A stretch of DNA of 63,942 nt, filler included, from Reticulomyxa filosa (taxonomy: Eukaryota > Protista > Foraminifera): NCBI GenBank assembly GCA_000512085.1. It is 27 parts of 27 records of this genome, joined end to end, with 100 filler letters (N's around TTAATTAATTAA, not from the genome) between each part and the next. Parts side by side here need not be neighbours in the genome. Positions count along the whole stretch, not along the records: positions 40,681 to 44,293 come from ASPP01003075.1; 26 more parts are not named here. The stretch is one strand, 5' to 3'. The position numbers and the translations under genes are program-made. Numbering within the stretch: position 1 is the stretch's first letter; each line of letters opens with the position of its first letter. The notes under the pieces were generated by a model, which was not told where the DNA came from, made no database searches, and saw only the letters and a list, made by a program, of their open reading frames with translations. Positions 1,876-44,293 of this stretch are shown piece after piece.

Positions 1876-2409
1876 TTTATTTTAATACTTTCAAAATGAA
1901 AAATGTTAAATTAATTTTTAATACAATTTCCAGCCATTCAAAACAATTTTTCGTAAAAAAAGATTTGTTGATTTTCAATTATTTCTTAAATAAAAGTGAA
2001 AATATATTTTTTTTATTAAGATTTCTTAAAATAAGAATTTTGATTAACCGAAAATGAAGATGTATAGTACAAGTTAGTACAATAATATACTTATGTACTG
2101 ACTGCTTAAATAACAAATACTATTAACGTTATTTCTGCAGTTCGTAATAGGCATGATGATCTTATGGAGTAGACTTTGTCTGGTACATCTAGTGTCTCGG
2201 TTGATCATATGATCTAAACACACTGCGTTTTTTTCTGATATTTTTTCATTTTTTATTTAAAAATACAAAAATTTGATTAAGAATTTATAAAAAATATTAA
2301 ATATATATTTTTCTAATTATTTATTAAATATCACAATTTCTTATTTTAAGTCAAGTTAAAAAAAAAAAGGTGATAACAAATAAAAGTGATAATTCAACTT
2401 TCATTCTAT

Positions 2410-2606
2410 TGTAGGACAAGTCACTATTACACATGGCTGAACCCTTATTGAACTGAGGAGCTCTCGTTGGGTTAAACTTATCCACCAACTTTTCTTCACT
2501 TTTTGTTTGTTTTCTTCTTACTTATTGAGTTTTCATTTGGTTATTCAATTTACTTTGCTTTACTGAAAGAAACCCGCTCACTTGTAAAAGTGTAAACGTA
2601 TATCCA
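2410..2606 (+). mobile_element. Solo-LTR-like dispersed repeat, copy A (3' end approximate)
   Basis: Begins TGTAGGACAAGTCACTATTA, near-identical to the start of the copy at 59510. Carries the shared core GAGGAGCTCTCGTTGGGTTAAAC, also seen at 26660-26800 and 57774-57912. Confidence 0.55.
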
Positions 2607-3477
2607 GTAAACCAGAAATAATCACAATTTGCTACTAAAATTTTCGTTAGAAACACAAAAAGTTCATATTTTAGGGTTGGCTATTTTTTTTTTGTCGTAA
2701 CTATTACAAAAGAATTTGAAAAAGTATCATTTGTTTTGAAAATGGAAAAACTATAATGGCACTTTTTATTTGTCTTCTCGAATTGAATACTTGTGCACTG
2801 ACTTGAAGGTAGAATAATCACATCTATCAAAGAACAAATGATTCATTGATACACACATATGCACATTACAGAATGATACAATATCATGACAAAAGGTAAT
2901 GGACGAAATTGAAAAGGCTGTTATTTTCATCATATTCAATTGATAGTCCTGTATTTTGATGAAATAACAGCATTTGATAATTTTTTAATTTGTTTTCATC
3001 ATTTCTTAAGATAGTTGTAAAAACCAAATAATTACAAAATAATAAACAAGAAATAGCCAAATAAAAAAATCAACGAAAAAATTTAATAACATTTTTAAAA
3101 GTCCAAACATTTAAAGGCTTTTCAACGAAAAAAAATATAAGCATAAAATGATTGAAATCTTTGAAAAAATTAGGAAAGATGAATAAAAAGCCAAATCATA
3201 TTTAAAACTACATGATCTATAAATATTTTTAAAAATTTGATTAAACGAAAATGTTAAGACAAATCACGGTGAACATAAATAATGTATGGTAAAAAAAAAC
3301 ATAGCATTAAGCATCTTTTGCAGTAATGACTGTTGTAAAAATTTTAAAAAGTAGTTATTGATCAATGTAAACGGAAACAGTACTTTAAAAAATGAATCAA
3401 TGCACTACGTAAAAGTATTTTTGTCAAAGCAAATAAAGGCATTAAAAGGCATTTTAAAAAAAAGCAAAGGAAGGGAA

Positions 3478-3547
3478 AAGCGAAAAAGAAAAAGTGAAAT
3501 AATGCGGCGCCTTAGGCGCCGCCCAATTTCACCTTTTCTTTTTGCTT
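3478..3547. repeat. ~70-bp imperfect palindrome with GC-rich core, at a contig end
   Basis: AAGCGAAAAAGAAAAAGTGAAAT..GCGGCGCC-TTA-GGCGCCGC..ATTTCACCTTTTCTTTTTGCTT; the arms are reverse complements with few mismatches. Confidence 0.85.
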
Positions 3548-3647
3548 NNNNNNNNNNNNNNNNNNNNNNNNNNNNNNNNNNNNNNNNNNNNTTAATTAAT
3601 TAANNNNNNNNNNNNNNNNNNNNNNNNNNNNNNNNNNNNNNNNNNNN
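3548..3647. other. Artificial contig linker (N44-TTAATTAATTAA-N44), first of 26
   Basis: Identical 100-bp spacers, with stops in all six frames, start at 3548, 11064, 13314, 14506, 15686, 17620, 22716, 23962, 26801, 28357, 29695, 32119, 36163, 37767, 38945, 40581, 44294, 47623, 50377, 52122, 53222, 54914, 56925, 58564, 60609 and 62316. Confidence 0.99.
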
Positions 3648-4286
3648 AATAATAATAATAATGATAATTATCATCAATTAACATATGTTGATCAACAAAA
3701 AACTTTATTTGATATTCTCAAATCCACTAAAAAAGATTCCACTCAAATTAATCATTCTGATGGATATCAATCCAATTTGGGAATGTTTCATCAATGGAAT
3801 CAACCTAAACATTTAGGTCATTCCATTACTTTATGTTCTTATACTGCCAATGTTTGATCACACTTTTATCCATGCAAAATCGCAATACATGTATTCCAAT
3901 TCAAAATATTCCCCCTTTTCCCCTAACGGTAAAGACAGTGTGCTGTTTGGATTTTCGAAAGTTTAAAAGTGTTTGAAATGAAATTATGTCAACAAAAAGT
4001 TTGAAATTTAATCAATAATCTAGATTTTAATGAAAAAGAGTTGCTTGAGATTTTTTTTCTCCTTTCCTTACAAAATGCTTTTCACAAACTTAAAAAAGGA
4101 AAAATTACAGAAAGTGCCAAAGATTTCTTGTTTTAACAAATTCTTCCTTCAATTATTTTCTCGCCAAAAAGAACAAAACACAACCTCTGTGTACCGTACA
4201 GACCAAAAACAAACCCATAAACTTGTGACAAAAACTCAAATTACCAAGCCACCTTTTTCCCTGAAAAAGAAAGTAGGAGAATTCTT

Positions 4287-7200
4287 TTATTGACTACTCA
4301 ATAATGTGTCAGTATCTTTGGCATCACTGTCATGACGCTCTGCGGATTTATTATTATCGACAGGTACTGGCCATCCAAGCCATCCATAAACGCGTTCTCG
4401 CCATTTGGGATGCCATGTAACATTCATAGATATACTCAAGATCGATGGCACTAAAGTGGTTCTAATTAAGAAGGTATCGACTAACACGGATGTAACCATA
4501 ATAAATCCTGCTTGGTTTAAGCCAGGAACAGTGGACAAAAATAATCCTGAAAATGCTGCAGCCATAATTAAACCAGCAGCAGTAATAATCGAACCAGTCT
4601 TGAATACACCACGGACAATAGCTGGGCGCAGAGGAACTCCATGTTTCATGTATTCATCAATTCTGGACCATAAGAATATATCGTAGTCCAAAGCCAACCC
4701 GAAGAGCAATGTGATTGTCATCAATGGAATAATCCAAGAGATACCATCAGTATCGCTCACACTCTTTGAATTAAACCATGAAAGCCAGCTGTATTGATAT
4801 ACCAATACTGCCAGACCATAAATCATAAACATTGGCATGGCTATCGTCAAGAATAATCGCAAAGGCAAGAATTTGTTCTTCCAAATAATTCCTGCAATAA
4901 TGAATATGATAATCATAGTTACCAACAAAATGTACGGGAATGTTGTATACAAGTCATGGATAGCGTCAATGGTTTCTACGGTATTACTGTAGTAATAACA
5001 TCTATATCCACGGCTTTTTAACATGTGTTTGCACGTTGGGTTGATAGCATCACGCATTCGGTTGACTATTCGTTTGCAATTCATACCGTTAGGATCATCG
5101 TGAGTCAACATAACAAAATATGCTTCAGCGTTATTTTTGCCAACATAGCCATCAACCAAAGCGTGATACAAACTACTTTTTTTAACATAAGTGTTGTATG
5201 TACTTTGTGCAGAGGAATTTCCGCTCAAATACTTTCCACCCATCATTGAAACACCACTCACATGATCAACTTGACCGACAGTGTCAGTAAGTTGTCGCGT
5301 AATTTCTTTGAAATAGTTTGCCGTGTCATTAATATAGGAATAATTGAATACTGTTACTCCTGGTGGAGCACGGATCAACAAATACATTGGGCCAATGAAA
5401 CCGGCGCTAAAGTGATCTTGGATATGTCCAAATGTTTTCCAATGTGTCGAATCTCGCGGCACTTCCAAGGTTTGGGCATAGCTAATTTCAATTTGCCCTG
5501 TCATCACTGTGATCGGCAAGATTAGCGCATACACGACCGCAATGATCAACAGTGAACATGGGAATAAAGTGGTCCAAGTACCGCACACAAACCAGCACCG
5601 TTGGAATGCGTTCGCTTCATCATCAGGTGTTATCTCAAAAGGACGGAATGGATCGTCATTATTAACAATAAAGTCCATATACTTGCTTTGAGAAGCTGAT
5701 ACAGCGCCATCTTTTTCTGCTTTTTGAGGCTCAATGCCTTTCTCTGTATCTTCGGCACCAACTAATGATGCTTCTGGTTCTTCTTTTTCCTCTTTTTCTT
5801 TAGCTAATAATCCTTTGGTTTGGTTAGTTCCATAATCTCCTCCGTTTGATTCGTTCGCTGTTTCTTCTGTTATTTGTGTTATGAAAGAGGGGGAGAAGGA
5901 GGTGTAAGAGGAGGAGAAAAAAAAAGAACGTACAGACAAAAGCTAACGATAAACGTAACCAACCTTGGGGTTGTACATCAGAATCATCAATAATAGTTGT
6001 TCGACGACAGTTAAACCCAAACTGTGTGAAAAAGCTTGGGAAAAGCAAAAGGATGGAAGGTGTCAGGGTTAAATTGATGGAAATAGCACAGCCGACGGTG
6101 ATAGCTGTTCCCATACCATACGATTGCAAAAACTCGACGGAGCAGAAGATGTAACCCATCAAAGACAATGCCAAGATGAATCCACTAACCAATACAACTT
6201 CTCCACTCCATCGGATCGTTTTTCGAAGCGCCTCATACACTTCCGACATTCGCAGCGTCTCTCTTTCGTCACCAATTTCCTCACGGAATCGAACCAACAT
6301 GAACAAGTTGTAATCAATGCACATGGCCAGCGCAATACTCGTCATCAACGTGGGAGTCATAGTGGAGACTGTCACTATTTCGGTAAACGGCAGAAGTAAC
6401 ATAAATGCTATGTTGACACAAATGACCATGGCCACAATCGGGATCAACGTCAGGCGCCAGCTTCCAATCGTGTATCCAAAGATTAGCAAAATCAATGGGA
6501 CCAAATACAAATGACTTTCAATGGTTTTTTTGCTTTCTTCCTGCATGTCGTTCCACAGCGCAATTTCTCCAGTGTACTTTGTGACAACAAGGTTGCTGCT
6601 GTCTTTGTTAAAATCCTGCTCAATGTCGTCCAACCAGTTCAACAGCGTGTGTCTTTGAGAATCGTCAATGTCATCTTTGTGCTGAATTATTGATATTGCC
6701 GAAAGCCCATCTTGACTGATAAGTGAATCCTTCACGCTTTGTGCGCAGCTTGCATTTTCTTGTTGAACGCCCGTGGAACCAAGTAGCGCTTCATCGTTAG
6801 CGGAATAGGCAGAACAAATCTTTATAAAAAAAACCCAAGGGGAAAAAGGGACAAACAGATTTAACTTAAAATTTTTAAACAAGTAAACTTAAAAAAAGTA
6901 GAATCTCATGATGTATACACATTTAGTTTGCAAAAAAAAAAAAAAGGGCTTTTTTTTAAAAACGTATACTTTTTTTTTTTGACGTTTGCACAGAAAAGCT
7001 TAACACTCAAAGAAGTGTAATAATCCGTAAAGTTGTAAAACTGCCCATGGTGATCTTGGCTATACTGTTTGTATTTTCCATATAACTTTTCTTGGAGACA
7101 TTTATAATTACACTTGCCATCGCCAGTTGCGTTATAAATGGTCGCGCTTCCATTCAAACACGATGAGGATATGCACTGCGAAAAAAGCAATACGTAGTTT

Positions 7201-7508
7201 GATCCGACCAAAATTTTAAAACTTTTTTCCATTTTCCCTTTTGCGATATAACTGTCACTGGATTCAGGCGAATTGATCGTCAATTGTGTTTGCTGCAACA
7301 ACAATGGTGCAAAAAACAAACCTAGCACTAACACCAAAACCCATGTGCTAATGATGCAGTACTTCGCCCAAGGCTGTATCAAGCATTTGAAAAAAAGTTT
7401 GAACGGCTTTGGATCACTTGTCGCACTGAGTTCGTCTTCCAATTCTTCTTCCACTGGGTCCTCTTGATTGACCAAGTGATGGGTTGTATGTTGAAAATCC
7501 AAGCTCAT
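4287..7508 (-). CDS. MMPL/RND-superfamily membrane transporter (two MMPL halves), spliced
   Basis: ORFs 6906..7508, 5824..6882 and 4287..5939 join through GT-AG introns 7004..6820 and 5963..5867 (~980 aa). Twin MmpL TM motifs 'IALAMCIDYNLFMLVRFREE' and 'LLFGLALDYDIFLWSRIDE', plus 'GSIITAAGLIMAAAFSGL' and 'VLVDTFLIRTTLVPS'. Confidence 0.88.
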
Positions 7509-40680: not shown

Positions 40681-41496
40681 AAACTTAATCACAGGACGTA
40701 TACTGTTCCAAAAAAAAAAAAAAAGGAAAAAAAGAAAAAAACAATAACTTTTCCATGACAATGTACAAATATTTTTTGTTTTTCAAACAAGTCCAATAAT
40801 TTGACAATCGACTTGTGATCCAATTGTTTGAGTATCTGAATTTCAGAACGCAAAGCCTTCTGGTCACAGCAGCGCTTGTCAACAATTTTTATTGCGCATT
40901 CTGCCCCAGTAATACGATGCTCTGCTGCAACTACTTTACTATTTTGACTTTCGCTGGCTCCCAAAGTTTTCAAAAATCTTTTCAACAAATAAATAACAAC
41001 AACAAAAAAAAGTATAAGTTTTGTGTGTCCCCTTTTTTTTTTTAAAAAAAAATTATTTATTTTTAAATCCAAACCTGTAGATATCTTTAATCTTCAAAGT
41101 TGATGCCTTTTGAATGTTTTCTGCCCAAAAACGGCACATTTGGGGAGAACCTGCACGAAATTGTAAGTTTAGGTAACGAATCTTCAATTCAAAGGTGGTG
41201 TCAGTGTTTGTTATCGTTGATGCGAAATTGCTTCCTTCCAATGGGATGACTTTTTCAAGTTCTTCACAATGCTCAGTCGTTCCACACAACAAAAAGTTGT
41301 TGTTCAGCACAAAATAACGTCGGCGCCACACTTTATTCGCATTGTTGCGAACATCCAAATACCCTTGACAAGTTGAATATTTCGGAAATGGGCTCTTTCG
41401 CTCTGCGTGTGCTTGGTTCTCACTTTGCACACGATCACGAAATCTTTGTTGTTTGTCAGTAGAATCATCCACTGTTAATCTTTGATTTCTAATCAT
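40681..41496 (-). CDS. PH-domain + CAMK-type Ser/Thr kinase, spliced, 3' truncated
   Basis: PH: 'QGYL...WRRRYFVL...IPL...FEL...FRA...W'. Kinase: 'AIKIVDK', 'EIQILKQLDHKSIVKL' and 'YLYIVME', the last reached through an A-run frameshift near 40775. Confidence 0.85.
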
Positions 41497-41882
41497 TCTC
41501 TAAAGATCTATCCTTAATAAAAAAAAATGCAACTGTTTATTTTCTTAAAAAAAGTTTTTCTAATTGGGACTTCTGCAAAAAAACTTAGAGCAAAGTTGCA
41601 AACTTAAAAATAGAGACCTTCTGACAAACGCATATATAATAATTAATATAAATTACAACGTGTTAAAATAAAAAAAACAAAACAAACTAAATAAACAAAC
41701 AAAATATCCAAAAATAAAAATTGAATTTACAGACGCAATGTACAAGCGAAAACAACACATATTATTTCGATTTTTGTCAAGATGAACTTACAAACTATAT
41801 CTTCATCCAAAAGATTGACGACGCTTGACTGGCACAACGTACGGTTTAGTAGTTTTTTTAAATTCACAAACTTCCAGGAGGC

Positions 41883-44293
41883 ATGCAAAACGAATCAAAG
41901 ACAGGAAAGTATGAAGCAGAAATGAAGGCGTTGATAAAATTATACGGTGACGTGGTTAAAGAAGATATGTTGAGGACACAGCTGGAGCAAAGTAATGGAA
42001 ACGTATCAGCTGTGACTGACCAGATCACCACTACATTGCTGAACAAGAAAGTAATTTGCATTTTTGCATAACAACAAAAAATATAATACATACTAAATCA
42101 TTTTTGCATCACAAATAAAACAATAAATAGATTACTGTTCAAGACTCAATTGAAGAGAAAAACACTCAACAAGTTAAGAATATTGATTTTGTCTTTCCTT
42201 TTTTTTTTCACATTGTTTTTTGATATATTTGCGCAGTAGCGTGTATTTTATTTTATTGACCGTGCGAATTAAAAAAAAAAAAGGTAATAAATAACAAGGA
42301 TGAACTAAACGCTGAATTAGAACAAGTGTCAGATACATTGAAAAAAGAAGAAGAAAAAGTAGAAATCGGAGAAACTAAACCTGGAATTAATCTGCAAGGA
42401 TATTGCATAAATATAGATTGTTTAGCTTCAAAAGCAAAATTACCAGTTTGGGTAAATCTTGAATTTAATAATATTTCATTTAACTCGGACAAGACATCTT
42501 ATTGTTGTCCAGACTGTGGACAATCCACTGTTACATCCATTTCAAGGGCAATGCTTTTCAATTCAGAACATACTATCAGTTCAAGTGACAATACTATCCC
42601 TGTGAAAGATAACCATTATCAATGCTTTTATTCAATTAAATCGGGATTATCTTATGAAGTGGAATCCAAGAAAATAAGACAACGTGCAACGAGTCTGGAA
42701 GATCTAATTACTCGAAGTGAAGATGCAATGACAAGTAGTGAGATAATCAATTTGGTGGCTGAATTACAGAAGTATCTGATAACAGTAGTAAAACCACCCA
42801 AAGTAAAAGATAAGGTAAGATTGTTAGAAAAGATCCAGTATGATTATAATGGAGATTATAATCAAGTATTTGATGTTGGAAGATTTACAATTTTATGTGA
42901 TAATGCAACCAAATTGCAAACAGCAGTGGCAGTAATGAAAAAGGCAGAAAAATTTAATCTAATTGTATCTGAGGATAAAGATTTTTTTGAAAGACAATCA
43001 AAGACACATCACAGATTCCATAATATTAAATTGTTTGTTCCAAAACATGATGTATATGTGGAAATGCAAGCAACATTAAAAAGCTTTACGACATTGGAAG
43101 GATACACAGTAATTGAAAATCCAAAATTAAGTCATCTTTTTTTATGAACATATCCGAGCGTGGAAATCAAAGAATTCAGAAGAAGAAGAAGATCTAAAGC
43201 AAGCAAGTGATGAAACTTTAACAAAAATTAATGATATTATTTGTGAATGGATTGACGACAGAGGAATACAAAAATTAGCAAATCGTTATAAATCACATTT
43301 GGATATAGGAATATTGAAACCATCACAACTATCCAAAAATGAATTGGAAATTAATAATAACGCGTCGTTGAAAATGGCACAATTTGTATATGAACAGCTT
43401 TGTAAATTCACTCCAGAGAAAATGAAAGGAAAAGCTATTTATGTAATTTTATATGAATATTATAAAAGATATATAATTGGAGATAAAAATCCAGCAAGTT
43501 GTGCTGATTTTGCATTACTACTACAAGAATCAAGGAAGCAAGAAATGGAAGAAGATATCACAATAGCACAAGCACTTGAAACATATATTCCATTACAAGC
43601 AAACAACTATCCATATGAAGATAATGAAAAAAAAGATACATTTGATTGTCATCAACATATCATTGAATTTTTAGAGGGAAAAGAAGTATCAGAAGAAAAA
43701 AAAAGTGAACAACAGGAACATAAAAGAAAAGTAATGATAGTTCAAGGAAAATCAGGGTCAGGAAAAAGTATATTTTGTCGTCATTTGGAGGAAACATTAT
43801 GGAATAATTATAAAAATGATTCAAAACAACCTATTCCTGTTTATATTTCTTTTCCAAAGATTTATAATATAAAAAATGAAAAGGATATCATTTTACAAGC
43901 TTTACAAAGTAGACATATCAGTAAGGAAAGTATGAATGCAATTCGTGAGAGAGTACCATTTGTATTCATTATGGATGGTTTTGATGAAATATTTGATAAA
44001 TACAGTCAAAGTGATAACAGTGATAAGTATTTCTATGATCGTTTTCATTTAAATCAATGGAATGCAAAAGTAATTGTCACTTGTCGAAGTAAAGTATTGA
44101 ATGACGAAGATGTTACTATTACTTTAGTTGGTGTAAATCAAAATCAAAGTATAATAACATCATTGATGTATTTATGGCCATTTACAAAACAACAAATTAA
44201 TAGTTATATTGAAAAATTTGCAGCAATAAAATCCAAAGATAAAATAAATAATGATTGGACACCTAAAAAATATGAAGAAACGCTGAACAATTA
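41883..44293 (+). CDS. NLR-like protein: CUE/UBA-like + Cys4 Zn domain + RelA/SpoT-like nucleotidyltransferase + NACHT NTPase (3' truncated; +1 frameshift in T7)
   Basis: Exons 41883..42050, 42131..42172 and 42284..> are GT-AG and phase 0. Synthetase-like motifs '[11 protein letters not shown]', '[13 protein letters not shown]', 'KDFF..HHRFHN', 'VEMQ' and 'HLFYE.IR'. Walker A 'GKSGSGKS' (43746) and Walker B 'FIMDGFDE', then 'KVIVTCR' and 'LWPFTKQQI'. Confidence 0.85.

Follow-up and report, generated by a model that had tools for sequence, protein, structure and literature searches.

What kind of protein is encoded at a locus of the foraminifer Reticulomyxa filosa in which the motifs of a RelA/SpoT-type alarmone synthetase are followed by those of a NACHT NTPase, and is the gene intact? 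The locus extends from 41883 to 44293 on the + strand of the window, by which we mean the whole stretch of DNA analysed (63,942 nucleotides, composed of 27 parts of assembly GCA_000512085.1 joined by filler). It lies in the piece 40681-44293, a part of record ASPP01003075.1 with a G+C content of 30%. An initial annotation had read it as an NLR-like receptor gene with a RelA/SpoT effector domain fused to NACHT. We regard as established the identities and order of the domains, the presence of a single open reading frame (ORF) in intact paralogues, purifying selection and the retention of catalytic residues. Judged by homology, the modules run from the N-terminus as a CUE-like segment, a four-cysteine beta-sandwich, a RelA/SpoT-homologue (RSH) domain of the Tas1/Apk1 type, a helical linker and a NACHT domain, with pentapeptide and WD40 repeats following in intact paralogues. 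On analogy we think it fairly probable that the gene belongs to a greatly expanded STAND/NLR-like family of R. filosa in which WD40 repeats would act as sensor and the NACHT domain would gate the synthesis of (p)ppApp/(p)ppGpp.

Searches were made with three separate pieces of the gene (41883-42050; 42326-43144, 273 residues; and 43149-44291), and intact paralogues were used in place of a joined protein. Two paralogues are referred to throughout as L001 (ASPP01024156.1, RFI_28085) and L002 (ASPP01018909.1, RFI_21712, also designated P0162). The conservation of catalytic residues was counted over about 125 homologous domains. The synthetase-like part of the gene contains the following elements:

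~42677 to 43144, + strand: RSH synthetase-like pyrophosphokinase domain, Tas1/Apk1-like, recognised by AlphaFold (AF2), Foldseek, the VIA aligner, sequence profiles and conservation, with a sub-threshold Pfam match
42800 to 42832, + strand: Syn1-like motif of the RSH domain
42869 to 42898, + strand: catalytic-Asp motif of the RSH domain
42968 to 43033, + strand: KDFF..HHRFHN motif of the RSH domain
43055 to 43081, + strand: VEMQ motif of the RSH domain

The ordered motifs which had first drawn attention to the locus are thus present at 42800-43081. In the window copy they supply K161/K169, D183-x-x-R186, K218-D219...R230-x-H232 and E246-x-Q248, and the final motif, H270-L-F-(Y-E), is interrupted here by a frameshift and intact in paralogues. 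Conservation among homologous domains was high at every position counted: K161 was kept in 126 of 128 and K169 in 127 of 130, D183 in 123 of 127 and R186 in 121 of 125, R230 in 118 of 126, E246 in 108 of 110 and Q248 in 112 of 114. The suggestion that all paralogues might lack the catalytic aspartate and glutamate is not borne out by these counts. The AF2 model of the 273-residue piece had a predicted local distance difference test score (pLDDT) of 87.7 and a predicted template modelling score (pTM) of 0.82. When this model was used with Foldseek, the top 50 matches were all RSH proteins (Rel, Tas1, RelP, RelQ, SpoT and CapRel), with E-values down to 3.6e-6. The VIA aligner placed ten RSH chains at Z scores of 10-13.8 over model residues 122-265, against Z <= 8.4 for generic nucleotidyltransferases. 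As modelled, the domain is a real RSH synthetase fold, which settles in its favour the structural check proposed with the initial annotation.

Sequence profiles narrowed the affiliation further. A mixed profile (A2) compared with the PDB found Tas1 (6OX6) at E 5.6e-18, then RelP at 1e-8, and then RelQ and Rel (Rel at 1e-2). A profile built from foraminiferal sequences only (A3) had Tas1 as its sole match, at E 8e-4. The same profile aligned by hhalign with a set of bacterial RSH toxin domains (A7) at a probability of 99.3% (E 8e-21), and this bacterial set in turn found Tas1 in the PDB at E 6.9e-24. By sequence profile, then, the RSH domain is closer to Tas1 than to the housekeeping RSH and small alarmone synthetase enzymes. 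The idea of a toxic small alarmone synthetase had already been put forward for this locus, and it gains strength from the fact that, among solved structures, a (p)ppApp toxin comes nearest.

That the product is a nucleotide alarmone seems to us, on the analogy with Tas1, somewhat the more probable outcome. An alternative is that the architecture and its gating are the same and that the RSH domain acts on tRNA or RNA in the manner of CapRel, FaRel2 or PhRel. We know of no (p)ppGpp effector network in the eukaryotic cytosol, and a direct macromolecular target is plausible for that reason. At the level of the fold CapRel (7ztb) is a clear match, with a VIA Z score of 11.6 and a Foldseek E-value of 2.9e-4, and according to passages of PMC11782079 and 10.1101/2021.04.30.441581 many toxic small alarmone synthetases target tRNA. 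However, the mixed profile that reached Tas1, RelP and RelQ did not find CapRel at E <= 1, the foraminiferal profile matched Tas1 alone, and the Syn3-like acceptor-side motif KD..R.H has been kept. We therefore consider a tRNA or RNA target unlikely, though not negligibly so, and retain an alarmone as the favoured product.

An exhaustive phmmer search of 1.84 billion representative sequences reached bacterial and metagenomic proteins with Pfam RelA_SpoT in the matching region; three of them, P0112 (40.6 bits), P0110 (30.7) and P0119 (30.0), exceeded the cut-off. Several other relatives of the RSH domain were found on eCIS-core or phage-Mu-F carriers (eCIS, extracellular contractile injection system) typical of polymorphic toxins. 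The nearest relatives from outside the foraminifera were the metagenomic bacterial proteins P0106 (3127 aa), P0114 and P0109. These carry the RSH domain at the C-terminus of giant polymorphic-toxin-like proteins with eCIS_core or Phage_Mu_F, and one of them has a calpain-like protease as well. A different arrangement was seen in P0112, a protein of 505 aa from an ENA metagenome, in which the RSH domain is followed by ankyrin and TPR repeats and no NTPase was detected. It may be another repeat-gated RSH effector.

The RSH domain is preceded by a second compact domain:

42368 to 42676, + strand: four-cysteine beta-sandwich domain of unknown function (piece residues 15-117), with cysteine codons at 42404, 42419, 42506 and 42515

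Modelled alone by AF2 this domain had a pLDDT of 93.5, and its four cysteines were nearly invariant among paralogues. Comparison with the PDB gave no significant match (Foldseek E >= 0.07; VIA Z <= 6.0). A cupin- or jelly-roll-like identity was rejected, since matches at Z <= 6 are within the noise. The domain resembles unnamed eukaryotic clusters from a rotifer, a sponge and Mucoromycota, with template modelling (TM) scores of 0.68-0.76 and a feature score of 0.95; the likeness is one of shape and of language-model features. Some of the clusters similar to the beta-sandwich are fused to ubiquitin/Rad60-SLD, RING or arginine ADP-ribosyltransferase (ART) modules. It may represent a domain that has not been described before, with a link to ubiquitin signalling or to the regulation of toxins.

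Downstream of the RSH motifs the gene continues into the NTPase:

43146 to 43730, + strand: helical linker, to which the C-terminal helices of RSH belong; an open frame, +1 relative to the RSH part
43731 to 44216, + strand: NACHT NTPase domain (Pfam PF05729)
43746 to 43769, + strand: Walker A, GKSGSGKS, intact
43959 to 43988, + strand: Walker B, hhhhDGFDE, intact
44070 to 44090, + strand: TCRS motif (VTCRS), intact, downstream of Walker B
44217 to 44293, + strand: continuation of the ORF, open to the edge and truncated where the piece ends

The linker is collinear with paralogues P0001, P0046, P0049, P0055 and P0162. The NACHT domain, which had been recognised from its intact Walker A and Walker B (DGFDE) motifs, was found by PF05729 at E 1.7e-10 and 41.4 bits, against a cut-off of 26.7. 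Beyond NACHT, intact paralogues have a helical region and then pentapeptide and WD40 repeats, the last numbering 9-14 in P0063, P0061 and P0162. The guess that the missing C-terminus would be a WD40, TPR or HEAT sensor was therefore a good one, as far as the full-length paralogues can tell. No C-terminal leucine-rich repeats were found in the full-length paralogues. Because these carry WD40 repeats and not leucine-rich repeats, we class the family by its sequence as NLR-like, or NWD-type STAND, and not as NLR in the strict sense.

The reading frame of the window copy is broken between RSH and NACHT:

43137 to 43143, + strand: run of seven T which creates a stop codon, TGA, at 43145-43147; the downstream coding frame is open from 43146

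At 43130-43147 the frame reads SHLFL-TGA, and from 43146 onwards NACHT is encoded in the +1 frame. The site has the sequence CAT C TTTTTTT ATG AA, with seven T where six would be needed for HLFYE, so that this motif, listed in the initial annotation, is absent from this copy. L001 and L002 have CATTTATTTTATGAA at the same place (CAT TTA TTT TAT GAA), which is one nucleotide shorter and encodes HLFYE. In six annotated paralogues the end of the RSH domain continues without a break into the GKSGSGKS of NACHT. The fusion of the two domains, claimed for this copy, is thus seen as a single ORF in intact paralogues such as L002, whereas the copy on which the claim was based is frame-broken. From the paralogues we conclude that the window copy is interrupted as assembled and that the RSH-NACHT fusion is real for the family.

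Since the paralogues are one nucleotide shorter and the ORF of L002 is intact, the break should be due either to a sequencing error in the homopolymer or to pseudogenisation in the very recent past. Of these we find the sequencing error the more likely, and indeed probable in its own right. If the extra T were real, the window copy would be a dead gene, recently lost in a family with a high turnover of birth and death, and its product, if it had one, would be at most a truncated beta-sandwich plus RSH protein of about 360 aa that escapes control by NACHT. The sequence as given does have a stop at 43145-47 and a change of frame, NLR-like families are often rich in pseudogenes, and none of the annotated R. 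filosa proteins matches the window copy exactly, the closest reaching 83-87%. L001 is also frame-broken, at another place: a 9-A run (7425-7435) just before Walker A is one nucleotide short. Against a dead gene stand the 382 codons that are open downstream of the break in DNA of 30% GC, and the ratios of nonsynonymous to synonymous substitution (dN/dS) against L001, which are low on both sides of it (0.11 for the beta-sandwich plus RSH, 0.12 for the linker and 0.22 for NACHT). Selection would probably also act against an ungated toxic RSH fragment. Both known breaks fall exactly in homopolymers of at least 7 bases, which are typical sites of length miscalls; this suggests miscalling, although real slippage mutations look identical. 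A recent pseudogene is accordingly a possibility to which we give weight but which we do not favour. In L001 the break has led to the annotation of two genes by NCBI, of 477 aa and 1177 aa, and many of the 'partial' or short RFI_ models of the RSH-NACHT family may be artefacts of homopolymer breaks.

A third explanation would be deliberate recoding at the T-run, in the form of programmed +1 ribosomal frameshifting or of slippage during transcription. Exactly the conserved HLF-YEH would indeed result if tRNA-Phe slipped by +1 on TTT-T. The paralogues, however, carry the junction in frame without any 7-T run, a conserved stimulatory context is absent, the A-site codon TTA is common in an AT-rich genome, and the break in L001 is at a different site. 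We consider recoding highly improbable. Two further candidates were rejected. A tiny intron does not account for the frame change, as the paralogues are collinear with the window across the site in both protein and DNA and differ by exactly one nucleotide. Frameshifting by -1 on the heptamer T TTT TTA would meet a stop after a few codons, and only +1 restores the conserved sequence. A length miscall in the T-run remains the explanation that we prefer.

How large is the family to which this copy belongs? A count of paralogues and of their C-terminal repeats had been proposed from the start. The RSH piece matched 58 short models and the NACHT piece 57, all of them R. filosa RFI_ proteins, and the RSH region of P0061 used as a query found 59 long R. 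filosa models of 750-1990 aa. These sets overlap, and on sequence matches together they give more than 100 paralogues in R. filosa. No match was identical to the window copy. Outside R. filosa the close matches were limited to a few metagenomic sequences, namely P0015 (55%), P0035 (42%) and P0084. Full-length members have NACHT, pentapeptide repeats and 9-14 WD40 repeats. An intact member, well suited as a reference copy, is L002, where positions 1930-7164 form a single-exon ORF of 1744 codons for the beta-domain, RSH and NACHT, followed by pentapeptide repeats and about 12-14 WD40 repeats. Some members are named automatically by UniProt as 'NACHT domain-containing protein'. One R. filosa protein departs from this plan: in P0067, annotated as an RFI 'vcbs repeat-containing protein' of 1017 aa, the beta-sandwich and RSH domains at 589-865 are preceded by about 590 residues without a Pfam match, and no NACHT domain was detected in it. 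This suggests shuffling of the effector module, within one genome, into architectures of other kinds.

The size of the family bears on whether its role is in conflict at all. These proteins could be regulatory signalling ATPases that use a nucleotide second messenger, for instance in the control of the cytoskeleton or of stress in a giant syncytial cell. WD40-NACHT proteins with non-immune roles do exist, such as TEP1 and NWD1-like proteins, and the RSH enzymes of plastids and bacteria are physiological regulators. On the other side, more than 100 diversified paralogues are typical of conflict genes (the number of synonymous substitutions per site, dS, was about 0.7-0.85 between the two that were compared, the window copy and L001), and the enzyme domain has its nearest relatives among the cargo or toxin domains of eCIS, type VI secretion systems (T6SS) and phage-Mu-F polymorphic toxins. 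Fungal proteins of the same design are classed with NLR effectors (PMC4986451, PMC10197012). A non-immune family is in our opinion distinctly improbable, and we return to the reading of the family as NLR-like receptors.

With STAND/NLR proteins on the one hand and Tas1-type toxins on the other as analogues, the action of such a receptor might be pictured as follows. The WD40 end would sense a ligand, which could be derived from a pathogen or could represent non-self after the fusion of cell networks. NACHT would then exchange its nucleotide and oligomerise, and the N-terminal pyrophosphokinase domains would thereby be released or brought together. With ATP as the pyrophosphate donor and the 3' OH of a purine nucleotide as the acceptor, they would produce (p)ppApp and/or (p)ppGpp. 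ATP would drop, and the affected cytoplasm would stop growing or die. A non-self trigger after network fusion would have its analogy in the fungal NACHT-WD40 proteins HET-E/D.

Several points weigh against this scheme. To our knowledge no immune or allorecognition phenotype has been described for any foraminifer. The C-terminal sensor of the window copy lies past the end of the piece, and activation driven by oligomerisation is proposed on the analogy of other STAND proteins. Pfam RelA_SpoT (PF04607) scored the window copy at 21.3 bits (E 3.3e-4), below the curated cut-off of 27 bits. Most copies of the family miss this cut-off, being so divergent; paralogue P0159 reached 30.2 bits, and precomputed PF04607 assignments exist for P0015, P0125, P0128 and P0159. 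As to the product, Tas1 homologues differ in their acceptor, which may be A, G or both, so that homology leaves it unfixed (PMC12691689), and other toxic RSH enzymes pyrophosphorylate tRNA, as set out in parts of PMC11782079 and 10.1101/2021.04.30.441581.

A bolder proposal can be made, which we offer tentatively and hold to be unlikely in its full extent. R. filosa, a giant syncytium with fusing networks, might have built its main NLR-like repertoire on a Tas1-like toxin domain probably captured from bacteria, independently of the fungal RelA_SpoT NLRs. Recognition of non-self or of a pathogen would lead to oligomerisation and to local conversion of ATP to (p)ppApp/(p)ppGpp, killing or sealing off cytoplasm. 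If this were true, it would be the first eukaryotic pathway of cell death or immunity run by alarmone synthesis.

The 5' part of the gene deserves separate description. The gene opens on the + strand at an ATG at 41883 and has three predicted exons bounded by AG/GT, all in phase 0, the long third exon beginning at 42284:

41883 to 42050, + strand: exon 1, 56 codons, phase 0, coding for a conserved peptide at the N-terminus that is possibly a helical module of the CUE/UBA kind; GT at 42051
42051 to 42130, + strand: putative intron 1 (gtaatt...aaatag), A/T-rich, with in-frame stops
42131 to 42172, + strand: putative exon 2, 14 codons, in phase, directly followed by gttaag
42173 to 42283, + strand: putative intron 2 (GT...AG), with its acceptor after an A-run

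The peptide of exon 1 could be aligned with the N-termini of at least 9 paralogues. A weak, sub-threshold Pfam match to CUE (E 0.02) was present in 5 of 10 members, and a profile search of the PDB gave the UBA-like domain of USP25 at a non-significant E of 0.4; exon 1 possibly encodes a module of this kind. Counterparts of exon 2 are the short acidic '..N.EQ' segments in the paralogue models P0005 and P0013, in which the GT is read through. Because paralogue P0016 is without the segment, putative exon 2 may be optional. The acceptor context of intron 2, an A-run followed by AG/GTAA.A.ATAACAAG, is found in L001 as well. The description of the locus as one spliced gene is therefore upheld in part: there are two putative in-phase GT-AG introns and the exon peptides recur in paralogues, but the RSH and NACHT parts are in different frames. 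Bacterial contamination was rejected in view of the putative GT-AG introns, the 30% GC and the fact that paralogues, over 100 in number, lie beside eukaryotic genes on contigs of R. filosa.

A neighbouring gene is located on the same piece at 40689-41496. It is on the minus strand, in the opposite orientation, and continues past the left edge of the piece. It comprises a PH-domain exon (Pfam E 9e-9) and an exon for the N-lobe of a protein kinase (Pkinase, Pfam E 3e-9), separated by an A/T-rich intron.

In the library searched, no paper linked Reticulomyxa with NACHT or ppGpp. No description of an RSH-NACHT family in Rhizaria was found, matches to Rhizaria and NACHT being judged by title and abstract. 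The single paper with both Reticulomyxa and NLR, a study of apoptosis induced by double-stranded RNA in cnidarians, showed in its title and abstract no sign of such a family, and there was no Reticulomyxa entry in the portions of the PMC12691689 supplement that were consulted. With the family described here, Rhizaria join the lineages with expanded NLR-like repertoires. The link to Tas1, an ATP-depleting (p)ppApp toxin, turns a vague annotation into a testable hypothesis of a pyrophosphorylation response by NLR-like receptors outside animals and plants. The family bears on the reuse of toxins from bacterial conflict systems in eukaryotic immunity, and it also brings to notice an unnamed four-cysteine beta-sandwich which recurs in other eukaryotes beside ubiquitin, RING and ADP-ribosyltransferase modules.

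In its general plan the family resembles the fungal HET-E/HET-D/NWD proteins and the bNACHT anti-phage proteins, which likewise consist of three parts, with an effector at the N-terminus, NACHT in the middle and repeats at the C-terminus. WD40 is the sensor in HET-E/D, and these proteins and bNACHT act in allorecognition or immunity (bioRxiv 10.1101/2022.07.19.500537). Their effectors are HET domains, nucleases and others in place of RSH. With FaRel, FaRel2, PhRel and CapRelSJ46 it has in common an RSH fold that serves as a growth-arresting effector held off until a trigger arrives, if the foraminiferal role is assigned by analogy. Those enzymes are bacterial or phage-borne, and toxic small alarmone synthetases are gated by an antitoxin gene or by a C-terminal pseudo-zinc-finger, whereas the foraminiferal domain would be gated by a STAND NTPase. 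Of this group CapRel (7ztb) matches at the level of the fold (Z 11.6), unlike at the level of the sequence profile, where it was undetected at E <= 1.

The closest enzyme is Tas1/Apk1 (6OX6), the type VI (p)ppApp synthetase toxin of Pseudomonas aeruginosa. It is the nearest solved relative by sequence profile, its RSH fold was aligned at Z 12.2 over 134 residues with a root-mean-square deviation of 2.9, and the motifs K..K...EK, D..R, KD...YR/HR, E.Q and H.LYE are common to both. Homologues of Tas1/Apk1 are very fast synthetases of (p)ppApp/(p)ppGpp that poison cells (PMC12691689), and they are found on carriers with eCIS, type VII secretion system (T7SS) or signal-peptide modules. Tas1 is delivered into rival bacteria and restrained by an immunity protein, whereas the foraminiferal domain is fused to a eukaryotic NACHT-WD40 switch. 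Pfam found no secretion module in the window gene or in the paralogues examined, and RSH is joined to NACHT(-WD40) instead. The acceptor-side loop also differs, being GYSGVN in Tas1 and HHRFHN in the window.

The same design, RelA_SpoT-NACHT-WD40, has been listed among fungal NLR architectures since 2014, for example in Gaeumannomyces graminis (Dyrka et al. 2014, PMC4986451), and in 2023 the fungal RelA_SpoT NLRs were called an 'intriguing' but minor clade of which the function was not known (PMC10197012). The novelty claimed for the locus holds for Rhizaria, where no description was found, but not for the three-domain design, which was already published for fungi. Both cases follow the order of RSH effector, NACHT and WD40 (the WD40 repeats of the foraminiferal family being those of the paralogues), and both are multigene families that are functionally uncharacterised. 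Among the matches from the phmmer search (1.84 billion representatives) there was none attributable to fungi, most of the non-foraminiferal ones being metagenome contigs. The foraminiferal family belongs to Rhizaria/Foraminifera, numbers more than 100 models where RelA_SpoT makes up less than 1% of annotated fungal NLR N-terminal domains, adds a CUE-like segment and a four-cysteine beta-sandwich at its N-terminus, and has a divergent RSH domain nearest to bacterial Tas1-like toxin domains. Its origin may have been independent of the fungal one. What is new is the lineage and the variant, not the kind of receptor, and beside the fungal proteins the foraminiferal family stands as a second, very large and probably independent case.

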